A stretch of 64,000 bases of DNA, from sequence record LC819008.1. The stretch is one strand, 5' to 3'. Below the pieces are notes generated by a model that saw nothing but the letters and a program-made list of their open reading frames with translations, was not told the DNA's origin and did not search any database. Shown here in pieces: positions 22,239-36,844 of this stretch (position 1 is its first letter; each line of letters opens with the position of its first letter). Both the position numbers and the translations under genes were made by a program.

Positions 22239-22838
22239 TTACCACAAGCTGTAACCAGCAGGTGTGTATTTGGGATTTGCCTGCCAGTCCACAATGGTTG
22301 CACCTACCTGACCATTAGGACTGGAAATGACAGGATAGTAATTGGTTTGTCCCGGCGAATAGGTCGTGAGGCTAAGTGTGCCTTCATTGACGCCATTGCG
22401 GTAATAGGTAAACTGTTTGTTGACAAAATCGACAGCCATGCCGACGTAGTCGCCTTGAGTAAACCCAGTTACACCGTAGTTAGCACGAACGTTGCTGTTG
22501 TAAATCAGCTGACTCACAGCACCTGTGCAATACCAGAAGACTTCACCGGAATTGGTGGTCCATGGCGTATTAAAAGGCGTCGTGGTTGTTCCAAGACCAA
22601 TAAGAGGGCTGTATGAAACAGAACCCTCAAACTGAGTCATGAGAACTTCAAAATACCACTTGCCTCCATTGGCAACGGCTCTGGAAAGTGTTGCAAAAAC
22701 TGAGCCGCCTGTGTTTCCGCAGTTCGCTCTCAGGTTTCCGTTTGAAACGGAAACCGAAGTAGCTTTAAGTGTTGGGCTAAAAGTCGTTGTTGTTGCTGCG
22801 ATTGTTTTCTTTTTTAACAGCAAGCTAGTTGCCAACAT
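22239..22838 (-). CDS. SPRY/B30.2-like domain protein, probably virion/tail associated
   Basis: GKWYFEV, GDYVGMAVDF, FTYYRNG, YYPVIS; N-terminal MLATSLLLKKK. Confidence 0.7.
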   Translation of the reverse strand: MLATSLLLKKKTIAATTTTFSPTLKATSVSVSNGNLRANCGNTGGSVFATLSRAVANGGKWYFEVLMTQFEGSVSYSPLIGLGTTTTPFNTPWTTNSGEVFWYCTGAVSQLIYNSNVRANYGVTGFTQGDYVGMAVDFVNKQFTYYRNGVNEGTLSLTTYSPGQTNYYPVISSPNGQVGATIVDWQANPKYTPAGYSLW

Positions 22839-22841
22839 AAA

Positions 22842-23441
22842 TCACCACCGAGAAAAGCCGGACGGAATCGGATTCACCAGGTTCGTCGTGAAGTCAACGA
22901 TCGCAGGCGAACCACCAGCATTCACGCTACATGAAACCGGATAGTACGTGTGTCCGAGGTTACTGTAAGTGGAAAGGGAGAGTTTTCCTCGCGCAGTTCC
23001 ACCAAGAATAAATTCGATCGTGTTGTTGACCAGATCCAGACAGATACCGATCACACCACCTGCACTTACGAATGTACCGTAGTTCAGACGTGCATCAGCA
23101 GCATAGCTGACCTGTGCATTATTGGGTGCGCTTCCGTAGAAGAGAACCTGATCCAGTGCGCCGCCGCCATACACGTTCGACAACCCTGTGCGTTCAGAAC
23201 AGATCCCGGTCATTGGTGCTGCGCCGCCTGACCACCCACTCTCAGTCTGGACAATCAGAATTTCGGTGTACCACTTTCCAGTAGTTTTACCGATAGTGCC
23301 GCGAGCACCTGCTCGTGAGTTGGATGCCAGCGTTGCTCGTGAATTGGTATTCGACAGCGTTACACCGGAAACTACGACAGCAGGATCCCAAGCCAGCAAA
23401 GATCCTGTCTTCTTCTTTAAAAGCAGGGAGTTGTCAAGCAT
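22842..23441 (-). CDS. SPRY/B30.2-like domain protein, tandem paralogue
   Basis: GKWYTEI, VIGICLDL, YYPVSC; likely start MLDNSLLLKKK at 23441. Confidence 0.7.
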   Translation of the reverse strand: MLDNSLLLKKKTGSLLAWDPAVVVSGVTLSNTNSRATLASNSRAGARGTIGKTTGKWYTEILIVQTESGWSGGAAPMTGICSERTGLSNVYGGGALDQVLFYGSAPNNAQVSYAADARLNYGTFVSAGGVIGICLDLVNNTIEFILGGTARGKLSLSTYSNLGHTYYPVSCSVNAGGSPAIVDFTTNLVNPIPSGFSRW

Positions 23442-23476
23442 ATAAAGCCCAGTATAATTGGTCAAAAGTCATAGAA

Positions 23477-33606: not shown

Positions 33607-33661
33607 TTTAAAAACCCCTGCTTGTTATTACTGTTACTGGTTTCGGTCGAAAACCAAATAA

Positions 33662-33859
33662 TCAGTCTCGCTTTATATCGTACAAATCCGTCAGTTCCGG
33701 ATGGTAAACACGCAACTGAATCATGTCCCGGTTGTTCGGTACTTCGTTGAACTCGAAGAACATGTTGAATGCTTGACCTTTCTGATCCACTACCTGGCAG
33801 AGGATGTGTCGGTCCTGTGGCAATTTATCCATCAAAGCTTTAATGTCTACCGGGGTCAT
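33662..33859 (-). CDS. Small hypothetical protein, 65 aa (MTPVDIKAL...)
   Basis: GAGG RBS before ATG 33859. Confidence 0.6.
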   Translation of the reverse strand: MTPVDIKALMDKLPQDRHILCQVVDQKGQAFNMFFEFNEVPNNRDMIQLRVYHPELTDLYDIKRD

Positions 33860-33886: not shown

Positions 33887-33925
33887 AAAAAGGGCGGGAC
33901 AGAGTGGCCGAAGCCACTCCATCCC
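33887..33925 (-). terminator. Intrinsic terminator, UUCG loop plus U tract; possible 3' end of the candidate ncRNA
   Basis: Minus strand gggat-ggagtggc-ttcg-gccactct-gtccc then gcccttttt. Confidence 0.7.
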
Positions 33926-34365
33926 ATGCCTAAGATGAAACTGAACTTACATCCCTAGGTCGTCGCATCACCACAAGGAAATGACGAGTGACGACTAAGG
34001 GCTATAAGCTTTGCAGCGTTTCCCAACGGATGCGCTACTTATAACTGGTCCCGAAAAGACCCCTTACAATCGATGCGGGCTTAATACACACGAAGGCCAA
34101 ACGACGTCCCCGCAAGCGCGAACGCGCGCGCCAGCGATTTACGTCAGGCATCACTAAGTCCTTAAAGGGAAACTCATATCGGCGGCACTAAGAGGCGGCC
34201 ATGAGTCGTGATCTTCGCGCAGCTTAGAGCAGTAGTATCGAGACTCTGCCTTCACCACATACGACGTGTGTATTTCGCGGGCCTTTCACCCGAGTCAGGA
34301 TATATCGCGCAATCGCACCATCCCGACCTCTGCCTCGAACAGATCTTCAGAAGCCATGTTGTTAA
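33896..34365 (-). ncRNA. Candidate large structured non-coding RNA (~450 nt), family not recognised
   Basis: No credible ORF; many nested stems found by eye, with G-U wobbles on the minus strand; GAAA/UUCG loops; bounded by hairpins. Confidence 0.5.
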
Positions 34366-34411
34366 AGAACGAGACGACTGACCAGTCCCTCACGAGATTA
34401 GGTCAGTCGCC
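34364..34411 (-). terminator. Hairpin (terminator or processing site) after the low-complexity gene
   Basis: gcgactgacc/ggtcagtcgt stem with inner GUGA loop followed by gttcttt. Confidence 0.55.
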
Positions 34412-34420
34412 AGATCACGC

Positions 34421-35671
34421 TTACGGTTGAAGCGAGTCGGTTTGATCAGCAGCTGCTGCGCCGTCCGCATCAGCCTTCACGTCGGTAGCCGCCGGCGTTT
34501 GGACTTCTGCTTGAACAGCAGCATCTGCGACTTCAGCGGTCGGGGCAACGTCGGCGGGAGCAGCGACTTGTTCAGCCGTTGCGTCCACTGCCGGCGTTTC
34601 CGCGGCCGGAACTTCTGCCTGCGCTTGTGCGGCGTCGGTTTCCACCGGCGCAGCCGTTTGCGCTGCGTCAGCAGCTTGTTCCACCGGAGCAGCGTCGACA
34701 GGTGCGCCAGTCAGTGCTGCAGCCGTTTCCGGATCTGCATTCACTTCGGGCGTTTGTGCCAGAGCTTCGGGCGAGTGATCGACTTCTTGCGAGGTCAGAT
34801 CCGCCGGAGCAGCTGCTTGTTCCACAGCGGGAGCTTCAGCTTGAGCAGCATCGGCTGCCGGTGCTTCCACTTGTGCTGCGGCATCGACGGCCGGAGCCGT
34901 TTCTACCGGTACTGCTTGCTCACCAGTGGCGGGGTCGACTTCCGGGGCAGCTTCTTGAGCCACGCCTTCGTCGGCTACGCCGGCCGGTTGAGCTTGTTCA
35001 GCAGCAGCGTCTTCCGTACCAGCTGCAGCTTGGGCCGGAACTTCGGCTTGTGCATTTGCTGCGGGAGCGTCGACTTGCGGAGCTGCGTCAGCCGGGGCTT
35101 GAGCTTGCGCTTCGCCTGCGGTCGGGTCCACTTCTGCTACTGCGGGTGCTTCCGGAACTGCCGGGGTTTCCGGTTGTGCCGGTGCATCTGCGGGCTGTTC
35201 CACTGCCGGTGCAGCTTGTTCAGCCGTACCTGCATCCGTGCCCGCTGCCGGATCTTGTTCGACGGCCGGAGCATCGCCCGTCGGTTGTGCTTCTGCGGTG
35301 CCAGCGTTGTCGACCGGTGCTGCATCTGCGGGAGCCGCGTCAGCAGGTGCCGGATCTTGAGCTTGATCACCAGCGGCCGGAGCCGCGTCTTGCGATTGGT
35401 CGCCAGCTGCGATCTGGTTGTCCAGAGCAACTGCTGCTGCGCCAGCGGCTGCGGCGGCTGCCGTACCGTTGTCGCCCAGACCGAGAGCTTCGTTCGTGGT
35501 GTCGCCGAGCGGTGCTTCGTCGCTTGCCGGCGGGACGATCGGATGGTCTTCCTTCTTCTTGTGGAAGATGCCGACGATACGTTCGACCACGTGTTCGGGC
35601 AGGGAGGCCAGGGCTTCGATCGCCAGGATTTCGGTCTTCAGTTCATCGAGAACTTTGTGGATGATGCTCAC
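34421..35671 (-). CDS. Acidic Ala/Pro/Gln/Glu/Asp-rich low-complexity protein, 416 aa
   Basis: GTG start after AAGGA; about 40-aa helical N-terminus, then a disordered repetitive tail. Confidence 0.75.
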   Translation of the reverse strand: MSIIHKVLDELKTEILAIEALASLPEHVVERIVGIFHKKKEDHPIVPPASDEAPLGDTTNEALGLGDNGTAAAAAAGAAAVALDNQIAAGDQSQDAAPAAGDQAQDPAPADAAPADAAPVDNAGTAEAQPTGDAPAVEQDPAAGTDAGTAEQAAPAVEQPADAPAQPETPAVPEAPAVAEVDPTAGEAQAQAPADAAPQVDAPAANAQAEVPAQAAAGTEDAAAEQAQPAGVADEGVAQEAAPEVDPATGEQAVPVETAPAVDAAAQVEAPAADAAQAEAPAVEQAAAPADLTSQEVDHSPEALAQTPEVNADPETAAALTGAPVDAAPVEQAADAAQTAAPVETDAAQAQAEVPAAETPAVDATAEQVAAPADVAPTAEVADAAVQAEVQTPAATDVKADADGAAAADQTDSLQP

Positions 35672-36498: not shown

Positions 36499-36589
36499 GA
36501 TAATTCCAGTATTGAGTTTGAAGGAAAAGCATTTCCCTAAAGCACTCATTTACTGAACTTCTCACTACTTAACTACCCAAGCTGCGCCT

Positions 36590-36835
36590 TCGTAAAGGGG
36601 TGGCCCGAGATCTTTATCGTTGGTTAGAACGCTTTGTTGAGCCGCACACCGTAGGAGGTTGGAGTATGCGCTCGAACTCGATCTCAAAGCCGAAAAAAAA
36701 TAGCAGGAAGGCATCTTCCTGCAAAAGGGGGAGTTACCCCGAACGTACCGACTCCCTTCACCACAAAGGAGTTTGCTGCCGCATGAGCGTGCTGCTAATC
36801 GAGTCGGTCGTTCTGGGCAAATCATAGCTACAGCA
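36590..36835 (-). ncRNA. Candidate structured leader or sRNA(s) with anti-SD-like loop
   Basis: Stems GAGC-GCATA/TGTGC-G-GCTC, ACTCCTTT/AAGGGAGT and ACCGACTC/GAGTCGGT; loop CUCCAACCUCCUAC. Confidence 0.35.
36693..36722 (-). terminator. Intrinsic terminator
   Basis: gcaggaag-atgc-cttcctgc followed by tatttttttt on the minus strand. Confidence 0.75.
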
Positions 36836-36844
36836 TTTATTTTT

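Follow-up and report, generated by a model that had tools for sequence, protein, structure and literature searches.

A large conserved non-coding RNA of jumbo phages with a hammerhead-like five-way junction

Our data show that the gap between gp213 and gp212 in the Ralstonia jumbo phage FLC4-4C (LC819008.1) encodes a conserved, non-coding RNA on the minus strand, which is organized in two domains and ends at a strong intrinsic terminator. Its 5' domain is a five-way junction of helices P1, H1, H2, H3 and H4, and the three strands joining these helices have the sequence and the order of those in the catalytic core of a type I hammerhead ribozyme. An obvious question is whether this new family of large phage RNAs also cleaves itself, which by analogy would occur between positions 34083 and 34082; we put the probability of this reading at roughly 0.5, with cleavage, transcript ends and biological role all being inferred. 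Positions refer to the window, i.e. the whole 64,000-nt stretch of DNA that was analysed, which is 100% identical to the phage record and represents the right end of the phage genome (adding 161071 to a window position gives the position in the record).

A conserved minus-strand RNA between gp213 and gp212

The gap extends over 561 nt between gp213 (34421-35671, minus strand) and the true ATG of gp212 (33859, minus strand) and is the largest unannotated one in 49 kb. A first-pass annotation, made by a model from the letters and open reading frames only, had described it as free of credible open reading frames, bounded by two hairpins and likely to specify a new structured jumbo-phage RNA on the minus strand that fits no recognized class. 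All of this held. No conserved open reading frame was found in the gap in 18 homologues, in which the longest sense frames vary in frame and position and every frame of the region is interrupted by 2-14 stops; the ATG at 34356, for instance, is AGG in RsoM3USA. Both bounding hairpins are real features, the 3' one being detected by a terminator scan and the 5' one (34373-34411) by covariation. The outer elements are the following:

33887..34355, minus strand: entire predicted RNA (about 470 nt), bounded by the P1 5' strand and the terminator U-tract, conserved, without conserved open reading frame and with covariation
34362..34411, minus strand: H0 feature with its hairpin at 34373-34411, directly 3' of the gp213 stop codon and followed by the U-rich tract UCGUUCUUUAAC

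Evidence for a selected fold comes from energy, pairing and compensatory change. With -227 kcal/mol the minus strand folds better than shuffles (z = -5.2; plus strand, z = -3.8). Over the whole RNA, 87.7% of the cells of the alignment model are paired, against 39-44% in slid controls, and compensatory changes on both sides occur in 58 pairs, against 19-24 in such controls; none of 500 shuffles reached the observed values for pairing and covariation. For the core junction the contrast is even more pronounced, with 97.2% of cells paired and 30-49% in slid controls (20 distinct sequences). That imperfect pairs are G-U on the minus strand had been taken in the first-pass annotation as a sign of selection at the RNA level, and this is borne out by 275 G.U versus 49 A.C cells in the model pairs. 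In well-aligned helices the ratio rises to 180 versus 6, an excess that agrees with an RNA made from the minus strand rather than with DNA.

Some reservations apply to these numbers. The covariation of the fold is based on up to 20 distinct sequences, which are related to each other, so that fewer independent events underlie the data than the cell counts suggest. In each sequence, the H4 3' strand was placed by a best-complement search, a procedure that favours pairing, and in members derived from a pattern scan CUGANGA, CGAAA and parts of both loops are invariant because the search pattern required them. Covariation scans of single columns were swamped by shared ancestry, and stacked pairs alone were informative.

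H0 covaries (alignment columns 13-23 with 41-51). From its sequence we read it as a terminator-like end of gp213, the hairpin having CGUUCUUUAAC as its U-rich tail, and it probably lies outside the core RNA. H0 and CGUUCUUUAAC are present again in L077, L088 and L089, but are swapped for a 103-aa open reading frame in L081-83 and L091; the motif associated with H0 occurs only once in the window. The 103-aa frame of L081-83 and L091 uses the UGA within CUGAAGA as its stop codon, and the RNA there thus starts inside the transcript of this frame. In FLC4-4C the 5' end of the RNA is inferred to lie at or upstream of 34355, its exact position not having been mapped. A sigma-70 scan revealed no promoter-like site in front of the RNA, and inspection of 25 upstream regions no shared promoter motif; as candidate promoter elements, CGTTCTTTAACAA was dismissed with a single occurrence in the window and TAACAAG with a frequency at chance level. 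Iterons are absent from the gap.

The five-way junction and its hammerhead-like strands

The 5' domain is closed by P1, a newly found helix, and its helix H4 carries a large variable domain (H5-H7). From 5' to 3', it consists of the following parts:

34351..34355, minus strand: 5' strand of P1 (GGCUU), pairing with 34078-34082, at the position of hammerhead stem I
34344..34350, minus strand: joining strand CUGAAGA, at the position of hammerhead C3-A9
34329..34343, minus strand: H1, 4-bp stem UCUG/CAGA with a T-loop-like 7-nt loop (UUCGAGG)
34296..34325, minus strand: H2, a hairpin found in all members, with variable sequence
34278..34292, minus strand: H3, 5-bp stem CGGGU/GCCCG with loop GAAAG
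34274..34277, minus strand: joining strand C-GAA, a C followed by the position of hammerhead G12 A13 A14
34265..34273, minus strand: 5' strand of H4, pairing with 34084-34092, at the position of hammerhead stem III and opening with an invariant A
34084..34092, minus strand: 3' strand of H4 (CGUGUGUAU), ending in an invariant U at hammerhead position 16.1
34083, minus strand: the one unpaired base that separates H4 from P1, corresponding to hammerhead position 17
34078..34082, minus strand: 3' strand of P1 (AAGCC), directly after the unpaired nucleotide in every member

P1 is found in eight different sequences, always flush against CUGAWGA, with all five pairs covarying and 100% of cells paired (20 sequences). 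Three of the four pairs of H1 covary, its stem appearing as UCUG/CAGA, CCGG/CCGG, GCGG/CCGC, GGAG/CUCC, GCCG/CGGC or GGGG/CCCC, and in its loop positions 1, 3, 5 and 6 (U, C, A and G) are invariant. H3, with 99% of cells paired, covaries between C-G and U-A and between G-C and A-U. H2 is a different hairpin in each lineage, in a region that comprises 41-47 nt in distant members; it is poorly aligned by MAFFT and only 53% of its cells are paired. Each of H1, H2 and H3 is thus either supported by covariation or always present. Eight of the nine H4 pairs covary, and the junction-proximal first one is A-U in 20 of 20 sequences, which the search pattern did not impose.

In 12 distinct homology-derived sequences only the fifth base of CUGAWGA varies (A or U), and CGAAA, with its (C)GAA directly 5' of H4, is invariant in all homology-derived sequences. 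The unpaired linker base is U, C or A but never G in 20 sequences, the triplets being AUU, GUU, GUC, GUA, AUC, CUC and CUA. From 5' to 3' the core thus reads P1, CUGAWGA, H1-H2-H3, (C)GAA, the A-U pair that opens H4, one U, C or A, and again P1, an arrangement of core bases that has not been described before. In addition, position 2 of the H1 loop and position 5 of the H3 loop change together in all 20 sequences, U being matched by G, and G by C or A; these co-varying bases adjoin an invariant C and an invariant G, respectively.

Nevertheless, this is not a canonical hammerhead, because its three-helix rule, i.e. A9 and G12 flanking a single stem II, is not met: H1-H3 intervene, and the bases adjoining A9 and G12 are not paired with each other. 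The Rfam hammerhead models gave no match at gathering score or at E<=10, even with a 101-nt stretch. A canonical version with G12 directly after H1 was rejected, the bases at this place (GGU, UGU, AGA or AAA) not being conserved. To our knowledge, no active natural hammerhead has two extra hairpins plus linkers inside its core. What is known is that phage intergenic regions commonly hold hammerheads, that stem II can be as short as 1-2 bp and that the GAAA strand can accommodate an insertion (PMC3088659), and also that the hammerhead core tolerates rearranged connectivity (PMC10085705). We do not class the phage RNA as a canonical hammerhead but propose that it works like one.

In the proposed mechanism, the T-loop-like H1 and H3, whose loop ends in GG, would dock onto each other in the manner of a tRNA elbow and thereby join the ends of a 'stem II' module. 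Internal transesterification after the unpaired nucleotide would then cut the minus-strand RNA at 34083|34082, releasing a putative 5' piece (about 275 nt) that ends in a 2',3'-cyclic phosphate and a 3' piece (about 195 nt) with a 5'-OH. The additional domains may tune or gate this cleavage or may themselves be the functional products. Among the roles suggested in the first-pass annotation, i.e. scaffold, sponge or ribozyme, the hammerhead-like junction favours the ribozyme, as a prediction that has not been demonstrated. Cleavage may not even be the main function, because 470-700 nt far exceeds what a hammerhead needs, and it is conceivable that a tandem G.A junction motif preserves the same bases without any catalysis.

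A bolder version, which we offer only tentatively, is a natural hammerhead-type ribozyme with its stem II replaced by a tRNA-elbow mimic. The core would then assemble only once the elbow module has folded or has been bound by a partner, with a tRNA-recognizing protein, RNase P, the ribosome or another RNA as candidates, and the RNA would be a gated self-cleaving switch; both catalysis and gating are inferred. If the chemistry of the core turned out to be different, it would represent a new ribozyme class that has converged on the same junction.

Several other pairings around the junction were considered and discarded. An RNAalifold pairing (GCUUCUG/CAGAGGU) breaks in L077, L080, L081, L088 and L089, and it is UCUG/CAGA of H1 that covaries instead. 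A kissing contact between the loops of H1 and H5 (UCGAG/CUCGA) is uncompensated in RSF1-type and RsoM3USA sequences, an extended stem I (GAU/AUC, ACAA/UUGU) is not conserved, and with just 3-4 bp, pseudoknot pairing of the H1 loop with the tail downstream of P1 (UCGA/UCGA) is, by our own estimate made without computation, too short to be told from chance.

Peripheral domains and distribution of the family

Outside of the junction, the RNA comprises the domain inserted in H4, the 3' domain and the terminator:

34096..34263, minus strand: H4 peripheral domain of H5, H6 and H7, which together with H4 form a four-way junction
34216-34263, minus strand: H5, apical loop CUCGAU
34150-34212, minus strand: H6, with the motif GGCCGCC..GCCGCC
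34096-34149, minus strand: H7, hairpin GCGCGCGUUCGCGC
33954..34061, minus strand: 3' domain of H8, H9, H10 and H11
34047-34061, minus strand: H8
34037-34045 with 34001-34009, minus strand: H9
34013-34033, minus strand: H10, with the GNRA loop GGGA
33954-34000, minus strand: H11
33887..33925 (33926-33895 in the terminator scan), minus strand: intrinsic terminator of 13-14 pairs with a UUCG loop, GCCC and then UUUUU

The three-arm layout of H5-H7 appears in single-sequence folds of 13 lineages, and the domain covaries (helices 5-16 of the alignment model). It is 107-234 nt long and differs in size and content in distant members, with peripheral domains being conserved within lineages. In the 3' domain, 96-99% of cells are paired in H8, H9 and H11, with compensatory changes in H9 and H11, and the inner stem of H10 occurs as CGUU/AACG, CGUC/GACG or UGUC/GACA below a GGGA or GAGA loop. 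The terminator has 99% of its cells paired and six covarying pairs, and in FLC4-4C as well as L096/L098 it is followed, after 30 nt, by the downstream gene's ribosome-binding site and ATG. The segment GCUUAUAGC is complementary to an upstream (forming H9) or to a downstream segment, and both pairings are largely kept in 15 sequences; no competing pairing was found for the terminator stem itself.

Seven of the eight helices that had been picked out by eye in the first-pass annotation match helices conserved in relatives: 34265-74/34083-92 is H4, 34208-12/34150-54 and 34201-07/34171-77 belong to H6, 34141-45/34103-07 to H7 (although this stretch pairs in only about 65% of aligned cells), 34038-45/34001-08 is H9, 34033-37/34014-18 is approximately the outer part of H10, and 33990-95/33959-64 belongs to H11. 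The eighth, 34248-53/34092-97 (GAAGGC/GCCUUC), failed; it is complementary in FLC4-4C, but its 5' side is uncompensated in relatives and it competes with H5 and H7. Two suggested pseudoknots did not hold either, since GCGGG of CCCGC/GCGGG is present in some lineages only, and in AUGCCU/AGGCAU only GCCU/AGGC is invariant, with uncompensated flanks and with GCC already engaged in H7. Likewise, a fourfold recurrence of CUUAG carries no weight, as a 5-mer with at least four copies occurs in 404 of 500 dinucleotide shuffles. What had been missed were the closing helix P1, and with it the five-way junction, as well as the joining strands of the hammerhead-like core.

Members of the family are widespread among jumbo phages of Burkholderiaceae-type hosts and among uncultured relatives and, as far as seen, are confined to jumbo phages. 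The RNA is kept in nine cultured relatives and about 15 uncultured jumbo-phage contigs, with 77-100% identity across nine phage records, and adjoins gp211 homologues in at least 10 metagenomic contigs. An initial scan of IMG/VR and a metagenome collection with an 18-nt pattern returned RSL2, RSF1 and otherwise only 65 chance matches (nhmmer check); pattern scanning also yielded further members from IMG/VR (contigs of 159-324 kb) and from Paraburkholderia and Caballeronia assemblies, and these share no flanking genes with FLC4-4C. Upstream and downstream genes differ completely between lineages, one upstream neighbour being a tRNA; in L095, L096 and L098 the RNA is preceded by tRNA genes on the same strand. 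Gene gp212 can be deleted without change to the RNA, which is kept where gp212 is gone. Across the family, the RNA comprises 330-700 nt. In L092 and L095 the 3' domain is absent, with the 5' domain and a terminator being kept; in L085 the RNA is missing and its site is taken by a 117-aa open reading frame called on the contig.

A Thaumarchaeota MAG contig (L102) contains the 5' half only, without a convincing 3' partner, and its membership is doubtful.

Alternative explanations and relation to known systems

The most serious rival, which we consider less probable than the hammerhead-like reading, is a stable, non-catalytic RNA with a role in trans, be it as scaffold, decoy or part of an RNP. 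Its elbow-like module might bind a host or phage factor that recognizes tRNA, and its hammerhead-like strands would serve folding, as a structural junction motif that consists of a U-turn and tandem G.A pairs. Large size, two domains, an intrinsic terminator of its own, GNRA loops and a T-loop-like loop, peripheral domains conserved within lineages, unrelated gene contexts with tRNA genes upstream in L095, L096 and L098, persistence of the RNA where gp212 is deleted, and the unmet three-helix rule all fit this explanation. Yet, it does not account for the sole variable position of the 7-nt strand being precisely the N of CUGANGA, for the invariant A-U pair beside a single base that is never G, or for P1 abutting the junction without spacer. 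Alternatively, the RNA could be a cis-acting 5' leader, i.e. a riboswitch or attenuator governing terminator read-through into gp212, gp211 and beyond. A terminator placed 30 nt ahead of the next gene's ribosome-binding site and ATG would be in line with this, as would the largely kept alternative H9 pairings of GCUUAUAGC, but we regard it as unlikely: there is no match to an aptamer family, the terminator stem takes part in no alternative pairing, the downstream genes are wholly different between lineages, loss of gp212 leaves the RNA unchanged, L092 and L095 have dropped the 3' domain yet maintain the 5' domain and the terminator, and 470-700 nt is far above the size of known leaders.

Even less probable is a structured 3' UTR of the upstream gene, gp213 or the 103-aa frame, that would shield the mRNA from 3' exonucleases. 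The frame's stop codon within CUGAAGA (L081-83 and L091) and the absence of a promoter-like site before the RNA speak for it, but in FLC4-4C and most relatives a covarying hairpin and a U-rich tract separate gp213 from the RNA, upstream genes are unrelated across lineages, with a tRNA among them, and mere stability does not need invariant junction bases. Finally, a DNA-level element such as a replication origin or packaging site, or an unannotated small protein gene, could be suspected from the largest unannotated gap in 49 kb and from the z-score of -3.8 for the plus strand. Both are very improbable, the former in view of the 180 G.U versus 6 A.C cells, the lack of iterons and the chance-level CUUAG, the latter in view of the absence of any open reading frame conserved in frame or position and the change of the ATG at 34356 to AGG in RsoM3USA.

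Returning to the hammerhead-like reading, its prediction of self-cleavage is directly testable on one in vitro transcript. Jumbo phages are being intensively studied, but their non-coding RNAs are almost unknown, and the RNA described here would be a widespread, large and conserved family of them. The function of many phage hammerheads is a long-standing question. If self-cleaving, the RNA would be a hammerhead enlarged to a five-way junction, its 'stem II' being branched, and could be the first natural one gated by an accessory domain. If non-catalytic, a phage RNA of 470-700 nt with an elbow-like module and strong covariation would still be a worthwhile object for structure determination and knock-outs.

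Comparison with known RNAs by covariance models yielded no relative. With Rfam 15, neither the whole region nor its sub-domains matched any family at gathering score, and at E<=10 only chance hairpin hits appeared. The lack of likeness to tmRNA, RNase P and group I or II introns noted in the first-pass annotation was confirmed, as ARAGORN found no tRNA or tmRNA in the window or within the RNA of relatives, and neither these nor RNase P RNA, group I or group II introns gave an Rfam match; the same is true for known riboswitch and T-box aptamer families. The RNA also brings to mind the cobalamin riboswitch (GGUGAAA..CCCGC), the J11/12 region of RNase P and, with GAAACACACG, loop B of the hairpin ribozyme, resemblances that have no Rfam backing.

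With the type I hammerhead (RF00163 and relatives) the phage RNA shares the order of elements around the junction, and it has all 11 consensus core bases in invariant form, with N7 and H17 being variable in both. In contrast to the three-way junction of the hammerhead, its junction is five-way, with H1-H3 at the place of stem II; the GAA strand does not directly follow the helix after A9 and is preceded by an extra invariant C, stem III bears a conserved domain of 107-234 nt, and 3' domain and terminator bring the RNA to 330-700 nt. As to the tRNA elbow, the H1 loop (UUCGAGU, UUCAAGU or UGCAAGU on a 4-bp stem) follows the T-loop pattern U-N-C-R-A, and the H3 loop provides G-G (or A/C-G), with the first base co-varying with position 2 of the T-loop, where tRNA has G18/G19 pairing with Psi55/C56. 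This contact between H1 and H3 is inferred from one co-varying position, and unlike a tRNA the phage RNA has no cloverleaf and no acceptor end or CCA, and its T-like arm precedes the D-like one. Engineered aptazymes are allosteric hammerheads with a sensor domain grafted on stem II; similarly, the phage RNA has an accessory folded module at the stem II position, the folding of which could decide on core assembly, but it is natural and conserved, has no known ligand or partner, and its regulation is purely inferred.

At the level of the entire molecule, the closest likeness is to GOLLD, ROOL, OLE and raiA, which also comprise hundreds of nucleotides, many helices and GNRA loops in a strongly conserved structure of unknown role. 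Rfam 15 covariance models for these and for HEARO did not match the window or three of its sub-regions. GOLLD and ROOL are often found near phage tRNAs, and the RNA described here is likewise phage-borne and in some lineages located just downstream of tRNA genes. It is set apart from these RNAs by a different architecture, by its restriction, as far as seen, to jumbo phages and by its ribozyme-like core.

Locus, boundaries and coding content

The window region is 100% identical to LC819008.1 (225 kb), the record of Ralstonia phage FLC4-4C, of which it forms the final 64 kb; FLC4-4C, of the genus Chiangmaivirus, is an RSL2-like jumbo phage related to phiKZ. The minus strand carries every gene surrounding the RNA gap, and no unannotated stretch in 49 kb is longer than this gap.

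Features at the locus
34421 (gp213 stop codon) to 33859 (real ATG of gp212): RNA gap between gp213 and gp212, 561 nt
34421-35671, minus strand: gp213, 416-aa, Ala/Pro-rich protein
34351-34355 with 34078-34082, minus strand: P1, junction-closing helix, GGCUU with AAGCC, stacked covariation

The 3' boundary of the gap is a textbook intrinsic terminator (13-14-bp stem, UUCG loop and T-run in a terminator scan), while the hairpin at the 5' boundary (34373-34411) covaries, so that both bounding hairpins of the first-pass annotation held. The latter hairpin, together with the U-rich CGUUCUUUAAC, probably represents something like a gp213 terminator, and relatives repeat such a module of hairpin and U-rich tract at this boundary with unrelated hairpin sequences. 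A search for a promoter of the RNA found none. The earlier claim of no credible ORF also held, i.e. no ORF is conserved in the gap: among 18 homologues the longest ORFs vary in frame and place, and the ATG at 34356 reads AGG in RsoM3USA. The proposed folding-energy check was passed as well, with -227 kcal/mol for the minus strand (z = -5.2 against dinucleotide shuffles; plus strand, z = -3.8).

Several observations concern the neighbourhood. The gp213 protein, without Pfam or PHROG match, is of low complexity and rich in Ala, Pro, Gln and Glu, and its relatives span 223 to 450 aa. The gene for gp212 (65-aa; 33662-33859) is cleanly lost in FLC8, FLC6 and FLC4-11C (retrieved loci L007, L008 and L009, around position 2066-2090), leaving its ATG joined to its last codons and the upstream RNA unchanged in all three phages. 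Between gp212 and gp211, a hairpin, UUUGGUUUUCGACCGAAACCA (window 33607-33661), shows almost no variation across all relatives and survives this loss. Another unannotated stretch, 346 nt long (36499-36844, minus strand, between gp215 and gp216), is 79-99% conserved in FLC6, FLC4-5C and RsoM3USA, and RSL2 and RSF1 retain part of it. It carries no annotated feature, has a folding z of -3.9, is overlapped only by an unconvincing 118-aa ORF, and might be a further non-coding RNA. Finally, gp198 (22239-22838, minus strand) is annotated with 92 aa in FLC4-4C, but its ORF reaches 199 aa and resembles a paralogue of the adjoining 207-aa ORF (22842-23465), so that what looks like a 324-nt gap there is coding.

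Relatives and distribution

Rfam 15 gave zero matches at gathering score for the whole 64-kb window and, at E<=10, only chance hairpin matches for the region and three sub-regions, and ARAGORN detected neither tRNA nor tmRNA; the first-pass view that no known class is matched held. The literature searched contained no account of this RNA and no jumbo-phage hammerhead either. Neither the fold nor the family has a precedent in Rfam 15 or in the literature that could be searched.

As had been suggested, related phages were searched by blastn, which recovered the region in 9 phage records, with identities of 98% (FLC4-5C, FLC8, FLC6, FLC4-11C), 89% (RSL2), 80% (RsoM3USA) and about 77% (RSF1, SURPRISE13). 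Metagenomic jumbo-phage contigs, gathered by protein search with the downstream ACP-like gp211 and subsequent contig look-ups, mostly have the RNA at the same place (L077-L084, L088-L092); in the L085 lineage, a 117-aa ORF is called at the site instead. Scanning with a pattern made from the conserved 5' part yielded further, more distant members in IMG/VR contigs of 159-324 kb and in Paraburkholderia and Caballeronia assemblies. Except for L095, these scan-derived members share no flanking genes with FLC4-4C, and the RNA is therefore an independent module. Family members are about 330 to 700 nt long, and a hairpin with a trailing U-run forms the 3' end wherever this was read (FLC4-4C and its close relatives, L092, L096/L098).

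Some of these loci have peculiarities of their own. The two bacterial members (L103, a 286-kb contig of Paraburkholderia sp. BCC1886, and L104, a 22.6-kb contig of Caballeronia arationis LMG 29324) may stem from jumbo phages whose DNA was co-assembled with the bacteria or is carried by them; L103 agrees with IMG/VR contig L094 across the RNA parts compared. In a Thaumarchaeota MAG contig (L102:1251-1318) only the 5' half matches (CUGAUGA, H1, a short H2 and H3-CGAAA), with no convincing 3' partner for P1 or H4; the match may be due to chance, the copy may be truncated, or the contig may be viral and mis-binned. Three distant lineages have same-strand tRNA genes (Ser and Asn, or Gly) on the upstream side of the RNA (L098:3545-3810, L096:6113-6379, L095:2663-2736), and in L098 the RNA begins about 10 nt past the tRNA-Asn gene, which suggests, by inference, that the RNA is co-transcribed with the tRNAs and obtains its 5' end through their processing. 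In some uncultured relatives (L081:1882-2193, L082:2086-2397, L083, L091:2057-2368) the gp213-like gene is separated from the RNA by an additional 103-aa ORF that has as its stop the UGA within the conserved CUGAAGA, so its coding sequence overlaps P1 and the core.

A five-way junction with peripheral domains

Projecting the FLC4-4C fold model onto a 15-sequence MAFFT alignment gave standard pairs in 87.7% of 1864 cells, compared with 39-44% when partners were slid by 1-3 columns, and changes on both sides in 58 of 127 pairs (19-24 in the slid controls); none of 500 shuffles attained these values. MAFFT misaligns the helices that score poorly here (H2, parts of H6, H7 and H10), all of them variable hairpins; when sequences are folded singly, the same arms appear in 13 lineages. 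The model pairs contain far more G.U than A.C cells, 275 against 49 overall and 180 against 6 in well-aligned helices; the structure is therefore that of the RNA read from the minus strand, as the first-pass annotation had concluded from G-U pairs. Seven of its eight helices match conserved ones. The eighth (34248-53/34092-97) is complementary in this lineage only, its two pseudoknots (CCCGC/GCGGG and AUGCCU/AGGCAU) are unsupported, and its fourfold CUUAG motif recurs at chance level.

P1 emerged from a scan for stacked covarying column pairs beyond the model. The helix itself takes at least eight different sequences, and in every member CUGAWGA directly adjoins its 5' strand, while the H4 3' strand is followed by one nucleotide and then the P1 3' strand. 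In an ungapped alignment of real core segments (20 distinct sequences), 97.2% of cells are paired (30-49% in slid controls), with covariation in 5/5 pairs of P1, 3/4 of H1 and 8/9 of H4. This makes the 5' domain a closed junction of five helices (P1, H1, H2, H3, H4). The scan pattern itself imposed CUGANGA, CGAAA and parts of both loops on scan-derived members, and H4 3' strands were placed by best complementarity. Only the 12 homology-derived sequences test the imposed positions independently; these alone are 100% paired.

H4 carries a peripheral domain, which in Chiangmaivirus-like members is a four-way junction with three arms:

H5: loop CUCGAU
H6: GGCCGCC..GCCGCC motif
H7: GC-rich hairpin

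Distant members have different arms in their place, with GNRA loops. The 3' domain (H8 to H11, with a GNRA hairpin) is well supported in the 15-sequence alignment; L092 and L095 lack it, yet keep the 5' domain and terminator. Within the family, GCUUAUAGC can pair either upstream (H9; 133/135 cells) or downstream (114/120 cells), with some compensation in both; whether or not by design, this could be a switch.

The H1 loop is T-loop-like (U-N-C-R-A-N-N). In the 20 core sequences, its second base and base 5 of the H3 loop change together without exception (U/G, n=12; G/A, n=4; G/C, n=4); their neighbours, a C in H1 and a G in H3, are invariant. The tRNA elbow shows this pattern (Psi55.G18, C56-G19). 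Inferring from this one co-varying position, an H1/H3 contact would hold the hairpins side by side such that the A9 end meets the G12 end.

Possible modes of action and the hammerhead comparison

Overall, our data show a conserved non-coding minus-strand RNA family with this fold and a hammerhead-like junction. What the RNA does is inferred. With a probability of roughly 0.5, it cleaves itself between 34083 and 34082. The products would measure about 275 nt on the 5' side (the junction with H5-H7, cyclic phosphate end) and about 195 nt on the 3' side (the 3' domain and terminator, 5'-OH start); the peripheral domains and the elbow module may help or gate this cleavage.

Alternatively, the same fold could serve as a non-catalytic scaffold or decoy, an explanation clearly less likely than not. 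A cis-acting leader seems unlikely, and a stabilizer acting as a 3' UTR slightly more so. A DNA element or small gene, to be set beside the G.U excess and the absence of a conserved ORF, is highly improbable.

Returning to self-cleavage, the junction reads, 5' to 3', P1, CUGAWGA, H1/H2/H3, C-GAA, an A-U pair, H4, one unpaired U/C/A and P1; that of a type I hammerhead reads stem I, C3-A9, stem II, G12-A14, A15.1-U16.1, stem III, H17 and stem I, i.e. consensus and strand order are the same. The sole variable base of the phage 7-mer is the N of CUGANGA, as in the hammerhead; the A-U pair opening H4 never varies whereas the remainder of H4, which carries an insertion of 107-234 nt, does; the linker base, like H17, is never G; and the triplets (AUU, GUU, GUC, GUA, AUC, CUC, CUA) are all compatible with N-U-H. 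We estimate from the count of fixed bases, without a computed statistic, that a random junction would match all of these features with odds of the order of 1e-6. In contrast to the single stem II of the hammerhead, bordered directly by A9 and G12, however, the phage RNA has three hairpins at this position, and it matches none of the hammerhead models in Rfam; it is therefore not filed as a hammerhead. That the junction works like one is a proposal that could as well be wrong as right. It is made plausible by the H1/H3 elbow pattern, by natural stems II of only 1-2 bp and the tolerated insertion in the GAAA strand (PMC3088659), and by the resistance of the hammerhead core to non-circular strand rearrangements (PMC10085705). 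The hammerhead ribozyme is the nearest known relation, of which the phage RNA would be a structurally expanded variant within a large 'ornate' RNA.
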